In this document: one piece after another, positions 40,191 to 46,726 of the stretch
Layout: the number at the start of each line of letters is the position of its first letter
Position numbering within the stretch: position 1 is the stretch's first letter
Assembly: GCF_003704095.1 (NCBI RefSeq)
Contig: NW_020847187.1
Location: forward strand, 310,001 to 374,000
Origin: Pocillopora damicornis
Lineage: Eukaryota
Length of the DNA: 64,000 bases
Direction: 5' to 3'
Made by a program: the position numbers and the translations under genes
Notes under the pieces: model-generated
Told to the model about the DNA's origin: nothing
Seen by the model: the letters and a program-made list of their open reading frames with translations, nothing else
Database searches by the model: none

Positions 40191-41386
40191 GAGCCCAATG
40201 ACCACTGAGTACTATTGCGCAATTTTTTCCATTTTGCGGTGGAGGAAATTAAAAAAAAAGAAGACAAAAAAACAAAGGCATTTTATGACTTAGCTACCAC
40301 AGGTATCCCAGCAAAAAGTTATAAGGTGGAAATATAAAACGGTTTCCCATGTATCCCTATTAATCAAGAAAGTGAGGAAGAACGAGGGGGGAGTGGTGCT
40401 TGTTGGATATTATGGCAAAGGGGAAGAGCGCTTATAGGAGAGAGGGCCTTCATTCCAGGAAATAGGGTATCTGAGGAGTTAAATTTAATAGCTTGTTCTT
40501 CCCAGATGGATATAAAAAACAGCCTTAACAATTACAAAAGTTGCACAATCTGAAGAAACTCTTATTTTATTACTATGCGGTGCATGAATATACTTAGTTG
40601 AATAAAAAGAAGCAATAAAATGAAACTTAAAAAAATCAACATTGATTTTCATGTCTTTGCATAGTTTCACCAATTCTTGATATTATGCAATGATTGACTG
40701 TCTTCCTAAATATATCATAAATACATTAAGTTACAATATCATTATGGAATATTTTAGATAAGAATTATATAAAATTTCAACTTTAACTTTTCGTGTAATT
40801 TACTTTGAAAACTAACAATCCTTTCTAAGAAAACTGGGAGTGAAAATTGAACAAGACATCTGAGATCAGTCAAGAGTTTGTAACTATCTTGTTTAAAAAT
40901 TGTCAGTTACATGCCAGAATTTCATCATATTTGCTTGTTACCTATTGAAATCTTATACATATTAAAATTATCTTTTGCAAGTTCAGTACTTGTTCATGAA
41001 AGGGAAAAGTCAAATTCTCCTGTGTCCTGTTGTGATCATAACCACACCCATTTCACACTTAACTACACCTCAACTAAAATCTGCTGTTACCAATTAAAAG
41101 AGGATTTGACCTGTACATGTAACTATTTGAGTCTGAGAATCTTAGATTGCTTAGTCTCTTTAAGTCTATATTGCTTTCAGCAAAATTACTTGACACATAA
41201 AAGGGTGCAATATGTTTTTCAAAAGGGACACTGCAATGCTTCCATAAGATTGTCTCAAACCTTCAAGTAGCCTAAAAATCACAACACTGAAAATAAGAAG
41301 AAAAGCTGGAAACTGAGAACTTAAAAATAATTCTTAGCAACTAGGTCAGATTGTTATAATAACCTTAACTGCTTTGTTATTATTGT

Positions 41387-44300
41387 TCATGGCTTTTCTC
41401 CAGAGGCAAGGCGTCGGTTGATATCTTCAATAACTGGAGGCAGATCACTAATGGAATCAATTACGTAATGAGCACCAGCATTGGCCAGGATATCATAAGA
41501 ACGTTTCAGCTTCCTTTCAAGGTCATCATCATTCAGGCTGGCGATCTCTTCTTCATTCAAACCAACATAATTTCCCTGGTTAAAGAAAAACAACAGAGTT
41601 GTTAGAAGGTCCACCAGAAAAAAGTATATATAGTCCTTCAGAGTCTTAGATTGACATGCTGACTAGTAAAAATTTTGCCCATTAAATTTGCAGCAAGAGT
41701 TGGAAATTTAAGGGAACTGTTTCATACACCAATTTGCAACATTTCTATAACTTAGTACAATTACAATAAAACAATATTTATGTTTCATAGTCTTCAGAAA
41801 AAGAACCTTTCTTCTTTCACCTTAGTTTCCAGAGGTACAGAGCCTTGGAATTTTATGGGAATCTCCAAATACCACAGTGTAAAGTTGTGGTCAGTTGTTT
41901 AGCATGCTACGCAATATTGCACAAGTGTTTTATCCGGCAACCACAATTTAATTTCTGGTAACCATTTTATGATTTCAGGGCTGTGTTGTTCAAAGGGGGG
42001 TATGATAACTCAGGATTAGTGTGGGATCTGATTTTAGAGATGAAAGCCTTAAAAGTAAATTAATTTTAACTCTTGTTGTCCACAATTTAATTATTGGTTG
42101 CTGTACTTATCCCATTAAGACTTCGGAACAAAAAAAAAAACAACAACAACAACAAAACAACAAAAATTCACTCTGGGTTTGTGCTGATTTGGCTCTTAAC
42201 AACTGGGCATCTTTTTGCCAGTTACAGTAGTCTGATTGTCTTTGTAGGAGAATACCAAGTAAAGAAACAATGCATATATATTATATTGAACTATACTTCT
42301 TGCTAAGTAAGGGAAATTGTGTAAATGAGAGCTAATACCTTAATCAAGAAGCTTATTTATGCTTCTGAGTGAGTGTGTGTAAGTGAGAGAGAGAGAGAGA
42401 GAGANNNNNNNNNNGAGAGAGAGAGAGAGAGAAACTGGCTATTTTGTGATATCCTTGTCTATAATCATATCATAAACGAAACTTACTGTTTTAGCAAGTC
42501 CTACACTCCAGCAGCCTGCAGATGTACCTTCCCTGACTCCATCAGCTGTGTCATCAACTTTAACAAGGGCTTCGATGGGATTGACATCCAGTCTAATAGC
42601 ACTCAACCAAACCATGTAAGGGTAAGGTCGGGCTTGTGGTACCTCATCTGCTGCAACATAACAATCAGGAGTATAGCCCTGCTTAGTGGCAGCCACCTTC
42701 AGTACATCTATCATGGATTTAGTGAATCCGGTTGTGGACCCAATCTTCAGGTTCATGTTGTTACGCAGGTAATTAACAGTGTCAACTGCACCAGTTATCA
42801 TCTGAGAGTAGTCCAAAATACAGTCAAGTTGCAAAGGAACAAAGTTCTGAAACATTCTTTCCACATCATCCTCATTGGGAAAGCGACCAAACTTTTCAAA
42901 CCATCTCCTTCGTACAGACTCCATCTCTGTGACCTTACGGATGTGCACCCTTTTGTGCATTCCCATGGGCTCTCTTGCCTCTTCCATTGTGATTGGGACT
43001 CCCTCATTTTTAAAGACTTCATTGAACACAACAGCTGGTGAGTAGACGCCGCAATCCAAAACAGTGCCAGACCAGTCCAAGATCACAGCCTTAATCTTTC
43101 CTTGGTATTGACGGACCATTCTATACTCGGAGCGAGGATTTTTCAACAGGGCACCTGAGGTAAAGTCAAAGTACATTTCAGGAATAGAAAGAATAATTTT
43201 GTAATGCGCTCCCTTTCTTCAAGTACTTTGTACAACAACATTTTCAATACAACCAAACATTTCATGTGAAGATAACTATATGAAGTAATTCAGGTCTACA
43301 TGAACTCTTTCAATTTCCTCAAAGTTAGTTTCACACTTTCAGACATACTGTGTCTTCATTTCATTACCCCTTTTTCATTCTCAAGAATGACAAACATCTT
43401 AATTTTCCTCACAATATCCCCCCTGAATCACACATCAAGGTCACAAAAACCAAGGAAATGATTGCCAACTGAAGAAGCTCTCTAAGCACCTTAGGAAAAT
43501 TACACAAAAAAGTATGGAGAATACGCAAACTGATCAAAGGTTGTCGAGAGTTAAAAAAAAAAAAAACCTTCAAACAAAACCATTAAAATAAAACCAGGTA
43601 TAAAAACGTAATTTTTGCACTAATCTTGATTTGAAGACTCATAAAATTTCTCAAAAAAAAAGTTAACTGGAGCAAACCTTCTGCAGTAATTAATGATGCT
43701 TGAAATCTCTGGGTGGTCTTTGAAATATTTTGCTACCAATATCACACAACAAAGAACCAGGCATTTTACGTGCGGAGAAATATCATGAAGACAATAGAAG
43801 TTTTTCTTAACTAAAAACCACAGTGGCTAAGATCTCAACTATTCATTTCCTGATGAGTAACTGTAACATTAAACACTGAGTAAAGTGAATGAAAATCTGT
43901 CATGGAACCTCTTTTCTAGTTGAATCTCTTAAGTCTTCACAGCAGAAACACTCATGGTGGCAAAGTGAATTTTTGAGGAACAATATCATTGAATAATAAT
44001 TTAAGCTTGAAGACTAGTGTATGAATAAAGTTGTTTTGTGTAGAAGCTTGTGTTTCATCAACAGAAAGAGATCAAGGCATTTAAAACAGCAGGCATTGTT
44101 CTATAATAAAAGCTTTCCCGTGAAAGAAAGCTAATTCATTGTGTGGCTGCAATGTATTCCACAAGGAAAAAAAATAATGCATTGATACCCTGATATCATC
44201 ATTGTGCATCCTCCCATAGCAACTCTGTTCAATATATTAAAGTTCATTCAAAACAACAATTTCTAACAAATATTTTTCTTCAGTTTAACAATCAGAAAAA

Positions 44301-45391
44301 AAGCTCAAAAACCAGCTAAATAGTTGCATTTTTGGCAATAAATTGACTCATTTTTGCACCGTATTACCTCTCCACTAGGAAATACTTCAGTATAACCCCA
44401 TACTGATCAAAAACAAAGCTGTAGACTCTAAGCACATCTATTGCTCTTGAAAAGGTCTTATTTTCATCCAAGAACTGCATGCATAATAAAGAAATAGACT
44501 ATGTGGAAATCTTGTCCTCCCCTGCCTTTATTTTCACGAGGAAGTGTGATTACTTGTTTCATAATGTACAGGACAAAGCTAGCCAATGTTGATCAGCTGA
44601 GACAGATGTATGTGAAAACGATCTTTATATGAGATAAGAGACCTAAAAAACTACACTGCACTATTTCTGAAAGTATACGATCATTGCCACCCACAAACTT
44701 CCCAATGTTATCGACAGGAAATACGTAACAGGAAATATGTAACACCGAGAAAAAAAGCTCACAGAACACGGCACACAGCAAAATCAGCATTCAAAACCGG
44801 TTTAACTAGTTCTGCCTGAAAATGGACAATGTTTTTCTCTAGGCCACTGTTCTTTTCTCAGCGTCGAATAAACGTTAGAAGCGTCAGATAAAATGTAATC
44901 AAATTTGAAAAAAAAGGTTTTTTGGTTACATTAATGATCTTGTTTTCTTCCATTAACAGATGCAAAGTGCATATTAAAGGACTTGGTAAAAGATACGTCT
45001 GAGATGACGATCAGTTTGAAAGGACCAAATCGCGACTCAAGCGCCATCGCTTGATACGTGACAGAAAATCTTTTGCTGTTATCAACTGATATGTCAATTG
45101 GCTAACGCAAGGAGCTCTCGAGTGTTCGCCCTTCGTCAGAACGAAGAAAAACGTTACAGAAGAACCCAATCGAATTAACACCAAGCTTAAGACTGAAATA
45201 CAAGTATAGAAAAACTGAAAGTTTTCCTCACCGTTGACCAGTTTCAAATCATGTTCACTTGTGTTCACAGTGGCGCTTGGTGCTTGGGCTTTCGCTTGAT
45301 GTGCACCACGAACCAAGATGTCGGTCGAATTAACGAGAGGACGAATAATGCGGGAAGAAGAAAAGCAAACCTTTCGCATGGTGGACAGCAT
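41387..45391 (-). CDS. phnX: Phosphonoacetaldehyde hydrolase (phosphonatase, HAD superfamily), 3 exons, 338 aa, with N-terminal presequence
   Basis: Exons 45391-45232 (G|GTGAGG), 43154-42487 (cag|GT ... ACA|GTAAGT) and 41575-41387 (cag|GGA ... TGA) total 1017 nt in frame. Motifs: AVILDWSGT (nucleophile Asp80), [12 protein letters not shown] (Schiff-base Lys121, 41 residues after the Asp as in Bacillus D12/K53), [38 protein letters not shown]-terminal RLASGEKP. Confidence 0.93.
41979..42208. mobile_element. Diverged Harbinger-like MITE in phnX intron 2
   Basis: Ends ggctgtgttgttcaaag ... aacaactgggc. The body is similar in reverse orientation to 23262-23499. Confidence 0.55.
42385..42432. repeat. 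(GA)n microsatellite interrupted by an N gap
   Basis: Directly visible. Confidence 0.9.
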
Positions 45392-46726
45392 TCTTTCTCG
45401 AGGTGTAGACCGGTTTATAAAAAATCGTGTGGAATAATCCAGTAACGTGCTTTGACCACCGCGTGTTAACTCAAGTTTTTGCCGCCGGCAAAGTAAAAGA
45501 CTGACTAACCGGACGTCAACAATGGCCTGTTTACCGCCTTGTCATGTGATGTCCGCGTGTTATTGACTTGATGCGTTATGCTGTCACGCTTGTTTACAAA
45601 AAACGACCCCCCCTGCTTAGGAGGTCAATTTCCACAAAACAATATAAATAATAATGAGCTTCACGAATGTTAATGGGGGTATGTTTATTCTTACCTGAAA
45701 TTAATTTTCAGATCATGGCTTATCACGAGGTCTTATATCAATTTCAGTCAAGTAATTCTTTACCTTTTTTTTTTTTTTTTTTTAAGAATTCCAGGTTGAC
45801 CTTGCATGACTTCCATCCATTTCATTGTCTTGAGGGAACAATTGCTCGGGCGGTTTGCATCAGTTGATTTAAACGCTTTTGTTTTATTCATGAAAGGAGA
45901 CTGCCTTTCGTGTCATGATATCATGAGGAATATTACACGCAAACGGTGGAAACGTTGGATAAATGCTCCTTAGTAAATGCGATCACGGCTAAGGTCGGTA
46001 GGATTTTCGTATTTTCAGTGGATAAAGTTGCGTGAAAGCCCACACATGTAGAAATCAATGGAGGAATAATAGACGCTATTGAATTAAACAATAGCAAAAT
46101 AATCAACGTTCTTTCTCTGGGTTGTCAAATTTCCACAATTATCACGTCACTCCAGGGAATTGTCTCCATGAGATTTGTGTTCCCTTAAGTAATGGCCAGA
46201 ACCTTTACGAGGTGGATGAAAGCCACGGAGACCATTCTTCATATGTCATTTTCAGTTGAATTTGTGTAGAACCCCTCTGACGCGGAATTTAAAGTCTTTC
46301 GTTAATAATTACGACGGAGCTTGCGTGACATGTAACAAAACACGAATCCTTTCCCTCGCAGCTTGATGTTTCTCCGGAAATTCGTGTCCAGTTTCCAGCA
46401 ACCAGCTACTTGGAGTTTGAACTCTAATCCACATGTGATCTTGTCGCATGATTTGGATGGGAGAGAATGTCTTGACACTATTAAAATGTCAACGTCAAAA
46501 GCTTCTCAGAGTTGAATGTTTGAAGTAAATACACTACTGGTGCGGAGAAATCGATTCGATTAACATCTATTTCTATGCTTCTATATAGAACTAAGGTTTC
46601 AAAATGATTTTATATTGGAAGCGGAATATTGCCACCTGGTTTAATCGAAAGAGCTGCTTCGTTACTCACTGTCTCTCCGGTAATATTTGGGACAAAAGGA
46701 ACGCAGGTTTCTGACAACTAGATCGT

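Follow-up and report, generated by a model that had tools for sequence, protein, structure and literature searches.

Phosphonates make up a sizeable part of marine organic phosphorus. The enzyme considered here, of the 2-aminoethylphosphonate route, splits the C-P bond of a common natural phosphonate, and the compartment of this breakdown matters. The bacterial phosphonoacetaldehyde hydrolase PhnX (Bacillus cereus; PDB 1FEZ, 1RQL, 2IOF) belongs to the same family and fold class as the coral protein considered in this work, although the coral protein has about 68 extra residues before the core, 54 of them on a separate exon, and the coral gene is interrupted by two spliceosomal introns. PhnX and the 2-aminoethylphosphonate (AEP) transaminase PhnW of corals have already been published. 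As far as the accessible text of these sources goes, both are present and expressed in coral genomes with synteny conserved among corals, PhnX being ascribed to transfer from dinoflagellates or microbes and PhnW being assigned to biosynthesis (PMC4878875; PMC3640398; 10.64898/2026.05.06.723128). Mitochondrial localisation was not found in print, nor was any presequence or other localisation of coral PhnX or PhnW in the accessible text: the string "mitochondri" occurs 0 times in the text of PMC3640398 as available, and the section on PhnX and PhnW in the main text of 10.64898/2026.05.06.723128, supplements aside, contains no localisation statement. The names of the annotated cnidarian and sponge PhnX models contain none either.

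Eukaryotic phosphonate metabolism is still described as cryptic in the review literature (PMC10574752). In another source, as far as its text was accessible, PEP mutase and phosphonopyruvate decarboxylase are predicted in the mitochondrion-related organelles of anaerobic rhizarians (10.64898/2026.09.23.753574). As given in that part, the rhizarian case resembles the coral one in that phosphonate metabolism is put in a mitochondrial compartment by predicted targeting, but it concerns the biosynthetic half in protists, whereas the coral case concerns the C-P cleaving half in an animal. A second likeness is alanine-glyoxylate aminotransferase (AGT). It belongs with PhnW to class V of the aminotransferases, and among mammals its location varies between mitochondria and peroxisomes via alternative start sites. 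Its N-terminal presequence is present or absent by lineage or isoform, as are the leaders of PhnX and PhnW, although AGT is another enzyme in another pathway. A presequence encoded on its own first exon is an ordinary eukaryotic means of enzyme targeting.

Gene layout, expression and enzyme identity

The window is a stretch of 64,000 nucleotides from Pocillopora damicornis (contig NW_020847187.1, positions 310,001 to 374,000 of the forward strand), and all coordinates below are those of this stretch. The PhnX gene is read from its minus strand, with the following features:

45392-45750, minus strand: RNA-covered stretch 5' of the ATG, from RNA contigs
45232-45391, minus strand: coding exon 1 of the PhnX gene, 160 nt, 53 codons plus the first base of Gly54
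45305-45391, minus strand: presumed cleavable matrix-targeting presequence, residues 1-29, from composition, helical moment and scleractinian alignment
45232-45304, minus strand: presumed linker, residues 30-53 plus the first base of Gly54, from the alignment
43155-45231, minus strand: intron 1, 2077 nt, phase 1, gt..ag, acceptor cctcag/GT
43380-43470, no strand assigned: dispersed repeat copy within intron 1, from genome-wide repeat matches and RNA depth
42487-43154, minus strand: exon 2, with an 18-residue N-terminal lead-in that includes Met66, then the PhnX core and cap to profile position 201
41576-42486, minus strand: intron 2, 911 nt, phase 0, RNA joint in 4/4 runs
41387-41575, minus strand: coding part of exon 3, 62 codons plus the stop TGA (41389-41387), PhnX profile positions 203-251

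Exon 1 starts at the first in-frame ATG (45391-45389), and the frame 5' of 45391 contains no other ATG up to a stop at a distance of 51 codons. Its translation runs through 53 codons to a single G, and because this one base is left between codon 53 and the donor (G/gtgagg at 45232/45231), intron 1 is in phase 1. The first-pass annotation had placed a phase-1 intron of 2 kb between exon 1 and an enzyme domain lying wholly outside that exon, and both points hold, the intron measuring 2077 nt and exons 2 and 3 covering the TIGR01422 profile. Intron 2 includes a (TC)n tract as well as a stretch of N. The RNA-covered stretch upstream of the ATG represents a 5' UTR of 359 nt or more, or else an overlapping transcript, and it contains two very short upstream ORFs. 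In run X1 a single contig (record 6) extends from the exon-2 joint through to 45750, and in run X5 the depth of about 337 drops 5' of 45380 to some 114 and 90.

Exon 1 is real, spliced as modelled and part of the dominant transcript form. The joint of exons 1 and 2, a minus-strand joint with GT..AG ends that leaves out precisely 2077 bases, was present in the RNA contigs of three of the four runs, from three studies, at depths of 621, 307.5 and 552, its sides in these contigs being short (26-30 letters each); none was seen among the RNA contigs of run X9. This is the opposite of transcripts that never include exon 1, the outcome against which the first-pass annotation had set its proposal. In run X1 the unspliced intron 1 contig has a depth of 25.5 vs 786 for the exons.

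On its own, exon 2 reaches 259.5 bits on TIGR01422, whose curated cut-off of 220 bits served as the PhnX equivalog test, and it matches profile positions 1-201 from its residue 20 onwards; exon 3, scored separately, accounts for positions 203-251. Exon 2 could be aligned to residues 5-204 of the B. cereus PhnX chain (E 1.6e-52). In this alignment DWSGT of exon 2 pairs with DWAGT and MGMHK with MGLLK, and we take the Asp in DWSGT and the Lys in MGMHK to be the HAD motif I nucleophile and the cap-domain Schiff-base lysine, that is, Asp12 and Lys53 of B. cereus. By score and catalytic residues, the coral gene product is predicted to be the phosphonoacetaldehyde hydrolase PhnX (TIGR01422 equivalog), and it would hydrolyse phosphonoacetaldehyde, giving acetaldehyde and phosphate. 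Its closest relatives in bacteria (P0101 and P0106, 276 aa, about 60% identical to coral PhnX) start at a point that aligns with coral S62-E63, and the B. cereus chain has only four residues ahead of the aligned core, so that bacterial PhnX is indeed without the leader, as had been claimed.

Composition and conservation of the leader

By the definition applied here, a mitochondrial presequence is N-terminal, 15-60 residues long, positively charged and acid-poor, and the definition also lists richness in Ser, Thr, Arg, Leu and Ala. The coral PhnX leader is N-terminal, of such a length, positively charged and acid-poor: residues 1-30 contain five R/K and one D/E, for a net charge of +4, and the first acidic residue is D24, in line with the basic, acid-free first 23 residues noted earlier. 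Its helical moment is 0.673, a value that 1.3% of shuffles get to, and R6, K7, R14 and R17 fall inside a 100-degree arc of the helix. The cleavage motif of the matrix processing peptidase (MPP) has Arg at -2 or -3. On the alignment, by eye, R/K-x followed by A/S/T is found at residues 28-30 in 5/5 scleractinian rows, and a putative MPP site may thus lie after R28-G29. The first-pass annotation had held that exon 1 encodes only a presequence. This stands for the basic leader but not for the last 24 or so residues, which contain acidic residues (E46 and D48 in the linker) and a class-conserved motif. The linker ends in DLKLVN(G), conserved within hexacorals, and in the alignment the motif near the exon 1 end reads DLKLVNG in hexacorals and PL..RHG in medusozoans. 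These last residues are probably retained on the mature enzyme.

Exon 1 is already contained in public gene models of cnidarians and sponges, since the N-terminus of the annotated PhnX of Porites lobata (P0006, 338 aa) is visibly homologous to the coral exon 1, and the annotated PhnX of Acropora muricata (P0011), Actinia, Exaiptasia, Hydra, Rhopilema and Corticium are of the same length class and leader type. Across 12 cnidarian and sponge homologues the leaders are 35-60 residues long; among the first 30 residues, 0-2 are acidic and the net charge is +3 to +7. Over the 91 pairs that 14 long forms give, the extensions share on average 19% identity and the rest of the enzyme 69%. Composition is thus held while the sequence drifts, a pattern typical of targeting peptides. 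A related coral has, in spliced cDNA-like contigs (L013 and L042), a leader homologous to exon 1, and cDNA-like contigs of other eukaryotes (L021, L022, L024 and L025) begin with classic basic leaders. The exon, its phase and the intron of roughly 2 kb are all kept in related corals. As to conservation of the intron position, which the first-pass annotation had put forward as a check, it is the same in three related coral contigs from a metagenome scan that extended to related corals and cDNA-like contigs, and the predicted isoforms of horseshoe crabs split at most one residue from the coral intron 1 site. At the nucleotide level exon 1 is 68.8% identical to related corals vs 63-69% for gapped intron alignments. 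This is not clearly above the intron, so the case for constraint is built on the preserved frame, start codon, donor and composition.

An extension that is translated yet holds no import signal would leave the enzyme cytosolic, with a basic tail serving regulation, membrane association or oligomer contacts. We regard this as unlikely. At the 5% level the hydrophobic moment is significant in 3 of 12 PhnX leaders and 1 of 3 PhnW leaders, and the nine PhnX leaders in which it is not, together with several animal lineages without any extension, would suit such a tail; the class-conserved motif, lying in the last third of exon 1, suggests a role on the mature protein. However, a composition that is kept while the sequence is not is unlike a structural or regulatory segment, and PhnW of the same genome has an unrelated, equally basic leader that co-varies with that of PhnX across taxa, as described below.

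The leader was also compared with signals for other compartments. An ER signal-peptide core needs about seven or more hydrophobic residues, and the longest run of A/V/L/I/F/M/W/C is three in the coral leader and 2-4 in the 14 long forms; with a longest run of three, there is therefore no signal-peptide core. The peroxisomal signal PTS2 reads R-[LVIQ]-x-x-[LVIHQ]-[LSGAK]-x-[HQ]-[LAF] near the N-terminus, and PTS1 is an SKL-like C-terminal tripeptide. The PTS2 pattern was found in 0/14 long forms, and PTS1 in none, their C-termini being GE.P (GEKP in coral PhnX). A role of the leader in sorting the enzyme to the secretory pathway, to peroxisomes or to the symbiosome is very improbable. Nothing specific favours these destinations, beyond the fact that corals have a symbiosome and that coral PhnX is tied to symbiosis in the accessible text of a preprint (10.64898/2026.05.06.723128), whereas the same kind of leader is found in the non-symbiotic Hydra vulgaris, sponges, a crinoid and horseshoe crabs. 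The origin of exon 1 as a copy of the presequence of another gene was considered as well. When the exon-1 peptides of PhnX and PhnW were searched against the genome at E <= 10, they matched only themselves, with no sign of a recent copy.

Met66 and the question of a cytosolic form

An internal Met66 lies at the position given in the first-pass annotation, where it was suggested as a possible start of a cytosolic form. This suggestion found no support: no RNA contig starting within intron 1 rises above the level of unspliced RNA, and Met66 is confined to hexacorals, being kept in 7/7 hexacoral rows (the coral gene included) vs 0/11 other animal rows, which have C, T, N, S or another residue. 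Moreover, two in-frame ATGs, M1 and M5, each with A at -3, come before Met66. Conservation within hexacorals would nevertheless fit a dual localisation, in which leaky scanning to Met66, or an alternative promoter, yields some enzyme without the leader as a cytosolic pool. Elsewhere in animals, the NCBI models comprise long and short isoforms of PhnX (Tachypleus 335/287, Apostichopus 356/352/290) and of PhnW (Ptychodera 404/376, Priapulus 435/411/372/360), so the principle of dual forms exists in the family. In the coral, on the other hand, the intron 1 contigs beside exon 2 are at unspliced depth (13.9-29.6 vs 307-786 for exons), and the sole spot of high depth in intron 1 is a dispersed repeat. 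A dual localisation of the coral enzyme is accordingly judged to be distinctly unlikely.

The spot of high depth, contigs of 33-42 letters at 43411-43443, was considered as an alternative mini-exon or promoter and rejected on account of this repeat. The search gave 1140 first-look candidates; 40/40 of those scored matched, corresponding to at least 39 other copies at 81-86% identity and its own place at 100%.

PhnW and a possible mitochondrial pathway

The first-pass annotation had asked whether a presequence is likewise present on the AEP transaminase of this genome. The transaminase gene (G000:C3501) has a first exon of 41 codons for a basic leader, whose first 38 residues include no acidic one, and the junction is again in phase 1. 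The leader is identical to the NCBI model of Pocillopora verrucosa (P0388) at 39/41 residues. The three PhnW exons, scored separately on TIGR02326, gave 102.2, 198.7 and 110.2 bits singly, a sum of about 411 vs the cut-off of 400.8, and the top named relative in the profile search was "PhnW-like [Pocillopora verrucosa]". A word search with the first core exon returned only genomic ORF fragments running into the intron. A larger PhnW search returned unnamed eukaryotic proteins, many with basic leaders, and no full-length cnidarian protein.

The N-termini of the two enzymes vary together. Both are long in Pocillopora, Corticium, Rhopilema and Antedon, and both are short in Patiria, Saccoglossus, Amphiura and Scylla; in Ptychodera and Branchiostoma the PhnX N-terminus has 12-20 aa and that of PhnW is short or non-basic. 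No discordant taxon was seen among the 10 taxa with both enzymes, but given the kinship among these taxa, and rows that in some cases stand for one NCBI isoform, the independent changes are few, perhaps 3-4. The genes of the synthesis enzymes PepM and Ppd are also present in the genome, and a crude scan for a first exon with an ATG start, basic composition and a donor end gave no convincing candidate for either.

Because exon 1 is real and expressed, its composition is kept and the PhnW leader is parallel, mitochondrial targeting is the best reading. We consider it likely that exon 1 encodes a mitochondrial matrix-targeting presequence and a linker on a bacterial-type PhnX, and that PhnW is built likewise. 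The earlier view of a targeting exon placed on the enzyme is partly supported: the exon is real and spliced and its presequence-type composition is kept, and the helical moments give a mixed picture across the leaders. In the reading proposed, leader residues of about 1-29 would be joined via the phase-1 intron to a complete bacterial-type phosphonoacetaldehyde hydrolase, and the PhnX precursor would enter through TOM/TIM23 and be cut by the MPP. PhnW and PhnX in the mitochondrion would then convert 2-aminoethylphosphonate and pyruvate to alanine, acetaldehyde and phosphate. Import, the place of cleavage and what becomes of the acetaldehyde are inferred; as the first-pass annotation suggested, an aldehyde dehydrogenase could consume the acetaldehyde.

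A broader hypothesis is put forward tentatively. The whole C-P-cleaving module of PhnW and PhnX may operate in the mitochondrial matrix of corals and other cnidarians, of sponges, crinoids and horseshoe crabs, and of several eukaryotes outside the animals, with the presequence of each gene on a phase-1 first exon. In starfish, brittle stars, acorn worms, amphioxus and crustaceans, both enzymes may have shifted jointly to the cytosol, or both forms may be made via alternative first exons. The lineages with leaders, without leaders and with both isoforms provide a comparative test set.

Cnidarians make phosphonates and now seemingly degrade them too. Phosphonoacetaldehyde is common to the synthetic and the degradative routes, so a hydrolase beside the synthesis enzymes would short-circuit synthesis. 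If PhnW and PhnX are in the matrix, this would be a simple means to separate or couple synthesis and breakdown, and it would bring the supply of pyruvate, the disposal of acetaldehyde and the release of phosphate to one site; a compartment shared by synthesis and breakdown, if that is the case, would need explaining. The reading of coral PhnX as a transfer linked to symbiosis is weakened because close relatives with the same leader are found in sponges, Hydra and bilaterians. If the matrix pathway proposed here is true, phosphonate phosphate would be set free directly within animal mitochondria, and the gene family would be an old eukaryotic inheritance and not a coral-specific transfer from dinoflagellates.

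Gene model of PhnX and transcripts of its first exon

The gene for phosphonoacetaldehyde hydrolase (PhnX) is arranged in the window as follows:

45391..45232, minus strand: exon 1, with the ATG at 45391, 53 codons plus one base, and the donor G|gtgagg
45231..43155, minus strand: intron 1, 2077 nt, phase 1, with the 3' end cctcag
43154..42487, minus strand: exon 2
between exons 2 and 3, minus strand: intron 2, 911 nt, phase 0, holding a (TC)n tract and a stretch of N
41575..41387, minus strand: exon 3, with the stop TGA
43380-43470: a dispersed repeat inside intron 1

The exons were profile-scanned one by one and not as a joined spliced model. Exon 2 by itself scored 259.5 bits with TIGR01422 (NCBIfam equivalog, cut-off 220), spanning positions 1-201 with the match beginning at exon residue 20, positions 203-251 were matched by exon 3, and exon 1 scanned alone gave no family match. 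Residues 5-204 of the Bacillus cereus PhnX structure align with exon 2 (E 1.6e-52), and both catalytic residues of that enzyme, its nucleophile Asp and its Schiff-base Lys, are present in the aligned coral exon. Upstream of the start, there is no in-frame ATG until a stop 51 codons away. The first-pass annotation had described exon 1 as a leader without early acidic residues, set apart by a phase-1 intron of about 2 kb and lacking in bacterial PhnX. This observation is confirmed, as acidic residues begin at D24, the intron has the length and phase listed, and the bacterial relatives (276 aa) start where coral S62-E63 aligns; the internal Met66, within MVRQYQG, had also been placed correctly. 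Elsewhere in the window, both strands of a tandem repeat at 38760-38900, whose period is 12 bases, contain open frames of the (CKQV)n type.

Four RNA runs, poly-A or cDNA and drawn from four studies, supplied the Logan contigs that were mapped on window positions 41100-45750. A GT..AG minus-strand joint skipping exactly 2077 bases, which brings 43154 beside 45232 after a +3 shift, was observed in three of the four runs (depths 621, 307.5, and 552), with flanks of only 26-30 letters, which is a caveat for metagenome-labelled runs. No exon 1-exon 2 joint was present among the contigs of the remaining run, X9, and the intron-2 joint was found in all four. In run X1, a single 558-letter contig extends from the exon 1-exon 2 joint across exon 1 to 45750. 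The contigs covering intron 1 in this run have a depth of 25.5 versus 786 for the exons, and therefore the spliced form is dominant, as far as contig depths tell. Moreover, in two cDNA-like metagenome contigs from a related coral (L013 and L042, 83% identical to exon 2), a homologous leader runs directly into exon-2 sequence. The joint and these two contigs speak against the possibility, raised at first pass, that transcripts never include exon 1. Upstream of the ATG, the RNA contigs continue for 359 bases or more (45392-45750), over two very short upstream ORFs, and the depth in run X5 falls stepwise across this stretch; this RNA could represent a long 5' UTR, several start sites or an overlapping transcript.

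It had also been proposed that Met66 could yield a cytosolic form, and nothing points to it here. The intron-1 contigs adjoining exon 2 are at unspliced-RNA depth, M1 and M5 lie upstream of Met66, each with A at -3, and Met66 is conserved in hexacorals only. A mini-exon, suggested by tiny high-depth RNA contigs in intron 1, was rejected because the spot is the dispersed repeat, for which a search of the coral's own genome gave 1140 first-look candidates, with 40 scored (the query place and 39 copies at 81-86% identity). In some animals of the family, dual location by alternative first exons is a real possibility, hinted at because the NCBI models of PhnX in horseshoe crab and sea cucumber, and of PhnW in acorn worm and priapulid, include isoforms with a long and with a short N-terminus (protein rows P0513/P0100, P0516/P0109/P0517, P0522/P0403, and P0527/P0498/P0529/P0528).

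Composition and conservation of the PhnX leader

A word search with exon 2 returned 3049 candidates and 2919 proteins at E <= 1e-20; the best 120 of the 2919 were listed, and 24 of these were inspected. The listed matches include cnidarians (stony corals, anemones, an octocoral, jellyfish, and Hydra), two sponges, echinoderms (a crinoid, a sea cucumber, starfish, and a brittle star), acorn worms, amphioxus, crustaceans, and horseshoe crabs. In twelve proteins of cnidarians and sponges, the N-terminus is extended by 35-60 residues; the net charge is +3 to +7, acidic residues number 0-2 among the first 30, and hydrophobic runs do not exceed 4. The N-terminus of Porites lobata PhnX is plainly homologous to the coral exon 1. 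Among 14 long forms (91 pairs), pairwise identity averages 19% for the extension and 69% for the remainder; the PTS2 pattern occurs in none of the 14, and all of them end in GE.P. For the leader in the window, the hydrophobic moment is 0.673, a value matched by 1.3% of 5000 shuffles, and its four basic residues lie inside an arc of 100 degrees; the 5% level is reached by only three of twelve PhnX leaders and one of three PhnW leaders. At the nucleotide level, exon 1 is 68.8% identical to related corals, which does not clearly exceed the identity of gapped alignments of the intron.

Near-invariant conservation begins at N59, five residues past the exon junction, and about ten residues at the end of exon 1 are kept within each class (DLKLVNG-like in hexacorals, PL..RHG in medusozoans). 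Because of this conserved end, exon 1 is likely to encode about 29 residues of presequence followed by a linker kept on the enzyme, so that the earlier reading of the whole exon as a presequence would stand for the first part and probably not for the remainder. Judged by eye, residues 28-30 read R/K-x and then A/S/T in all five scleractinian rows, a pattern that would presumably fit an Arg-2 processing site.

The position of intron 1 was followed in a metagenome scan of 36 loci, where the 20 containing the start of exon 2 were examined. In six genomic loci of related corals (L011, L012, L014, L026, L044, and L046), the open frame ends directly before the same Gly. Exon 1 was searched for in ten genomic-type loci and found in three: L011 (166 nt, donor AACG|gtaaga, phase 1, intron of 1971 nt), L014 (same exon length, donor and phase, intron of 2156 nt), and L044, where the contig end cuts through the exon; the other seven gave no match or had too little upstream DNA. 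The Tachypleus (335 and 287 aa) and Limulus PhnX isoforms at NCBI diverge at most one residue from the coral junction. Thus, conservation of the intron position, which the first-pass annotation had asked about, holds for related corals, and for distant animals it is indicated indirectly by these divergence points. Four further metagenome contigs (L021, L022, L024, and L025), apparently from non-animal eukaryotes, encode PhnX relatives (60-72% identity) with classic basic leaders and the common insert ..GSG...N.TG....TGFSV.DSDV.QN..HEW; L021 is without an intron at the junction.

The partner enzyme PhnW and other phosphonate genes

A word search for 2-aminoethylphosphonate-pyruvate transaminase (PhnW) gave genomic ORF fragments only, and was followed by a large search and by a profile search in which the coral PhnW exons were entered as separate rows. 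The genes concerned are:

G000:C3501:51947-54650 (own-genome contig; L010 7948-8070 and 8626-8954, L005 1498-1998 and 2179-2490): PhnW-like gene, four exons
G000:C3436:556240-558236, plus strand, and G000:C4007:406331-411471, minus strand: PEP mutase and phosphonopyruvate decarboxylase genes

Three of the PhnW exons separately score 102.2, 198.7, and 110.2 bits with TIGR02326. About 555 bases upstream of the first matching exon lies a predicted ATG-initiated exon of 41 codons, with six basic and no acidic residues in the first 30 and no acidic residue before position 39. Its donor G|gtatga is in phase 1 and compatible with the acceptor ttcattcag|AT, so the design, a basic leader plus a phase-1 intron, is that of PhnX. 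The best match of the profile search is the NCBI model of Pocillopora verrucosa PhnW (419 aa), in which 39 of 41 leader residues are identical to the coral first exon and which carries the residue predicted for the split codon. The question whether the transaminase also has a presequence is thereby answered in favor of a predicted one. Basic leaders were also found on PhnW of other eukaryotes in the large search.

The PhnW leader is long and basic in Pocillopora, Nematostella, Corticium, Rhopilema, Antedon, many molluscs, Lingula, and Capsaspora. A short extension, of 5-16 residues, is seen in Patiria, Asterias, Amphiura, Saccoglossus, Ptychodera isoform X2, Macrobrachium, Periplaneta, and two bacteria. 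The leader states of the two enzymes are concordant in all ten taxa having both:

Both long: Pocillopora, Corticium, Rhopilema, Antedon
Both short: Patiria, Saccoglossus, Amphiura, Scylla
PhnX 12-20 aa, PhnW short or non-basic: Ptychodera, Branchiostoma

Because of the relatedness of the taxa, and because some rows stand for one isoform each, this co-variation amounts to a handful of independent events; even so, it is telling that the crinoid departs in both genes from the remaining echinoderms.

Since PEP mutase and phosphonopyruvate decarboxylase genes are present, the coral is probably also able to make phosphonates; the first coding exons of these two genes were not found at their loci. 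A PhnX-like HAD hydrolase, intronless and of 247 aa, was observed at G000:C3714:2835-3434 (L002 1411-2154, minus strand). It scores 148 bits with TIGR03351 and 128 bits with TIGR01422, each under the cut-off, has no basic leader, and may be a paralogue, stem from contamination or be another enzyme.

Compartment and origin of animal phosphonate cleavage

The PhnX and PhnW genes are already annotated and published, and a presequence on a separate first exon is an ordinary kind of feature. PhnX in corals was listed as a transfer candidate (eLife 2016, PMC4878875), and both genes were reported from nearly all coral genomes, expressed and syntenic, with an argument for transfer via Symbiodiniaceae (bioRxiv 10.64898/2026.05.06.723128); section 7 of that preprint contains no statement on localisation. 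Shoguchi et al. (2013; PMC3640398) gave the transaminase as a biosynthetic step, and a 2023 review (PMC10574752) terms eukaryotic phosphonate metabolism cryptic; 'mitochondri' has 0 occurrences in either. PEP mutase and phosphonopyruvate decarboxylase have been predicted in rhizarian mitochondrion-related organelles (bioRxiv 10.64898/2026.09.23.753574). A mitochondrial PhnX or PhnW was not found in the parts of the literature searched (supplements and most subscription journals fell outside its scope). Because close PhnX relatives (55-85% identity) occur among the listed matches in sponges, Hydra, echinoderms, hemichordates, amphioxus, and arthropods, the published coral-specific transfer from dinoflagellates would sit badly with this broad distribution. 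On the sequence evidence, we consider it likely that exon 1 targets PhnX to mitochondria, which is the best-supported reading of the leader and would extend to PhnW. New here are the probable compartment of C-P cleavage in animals and the pattern that this compartment would follow across lineages.
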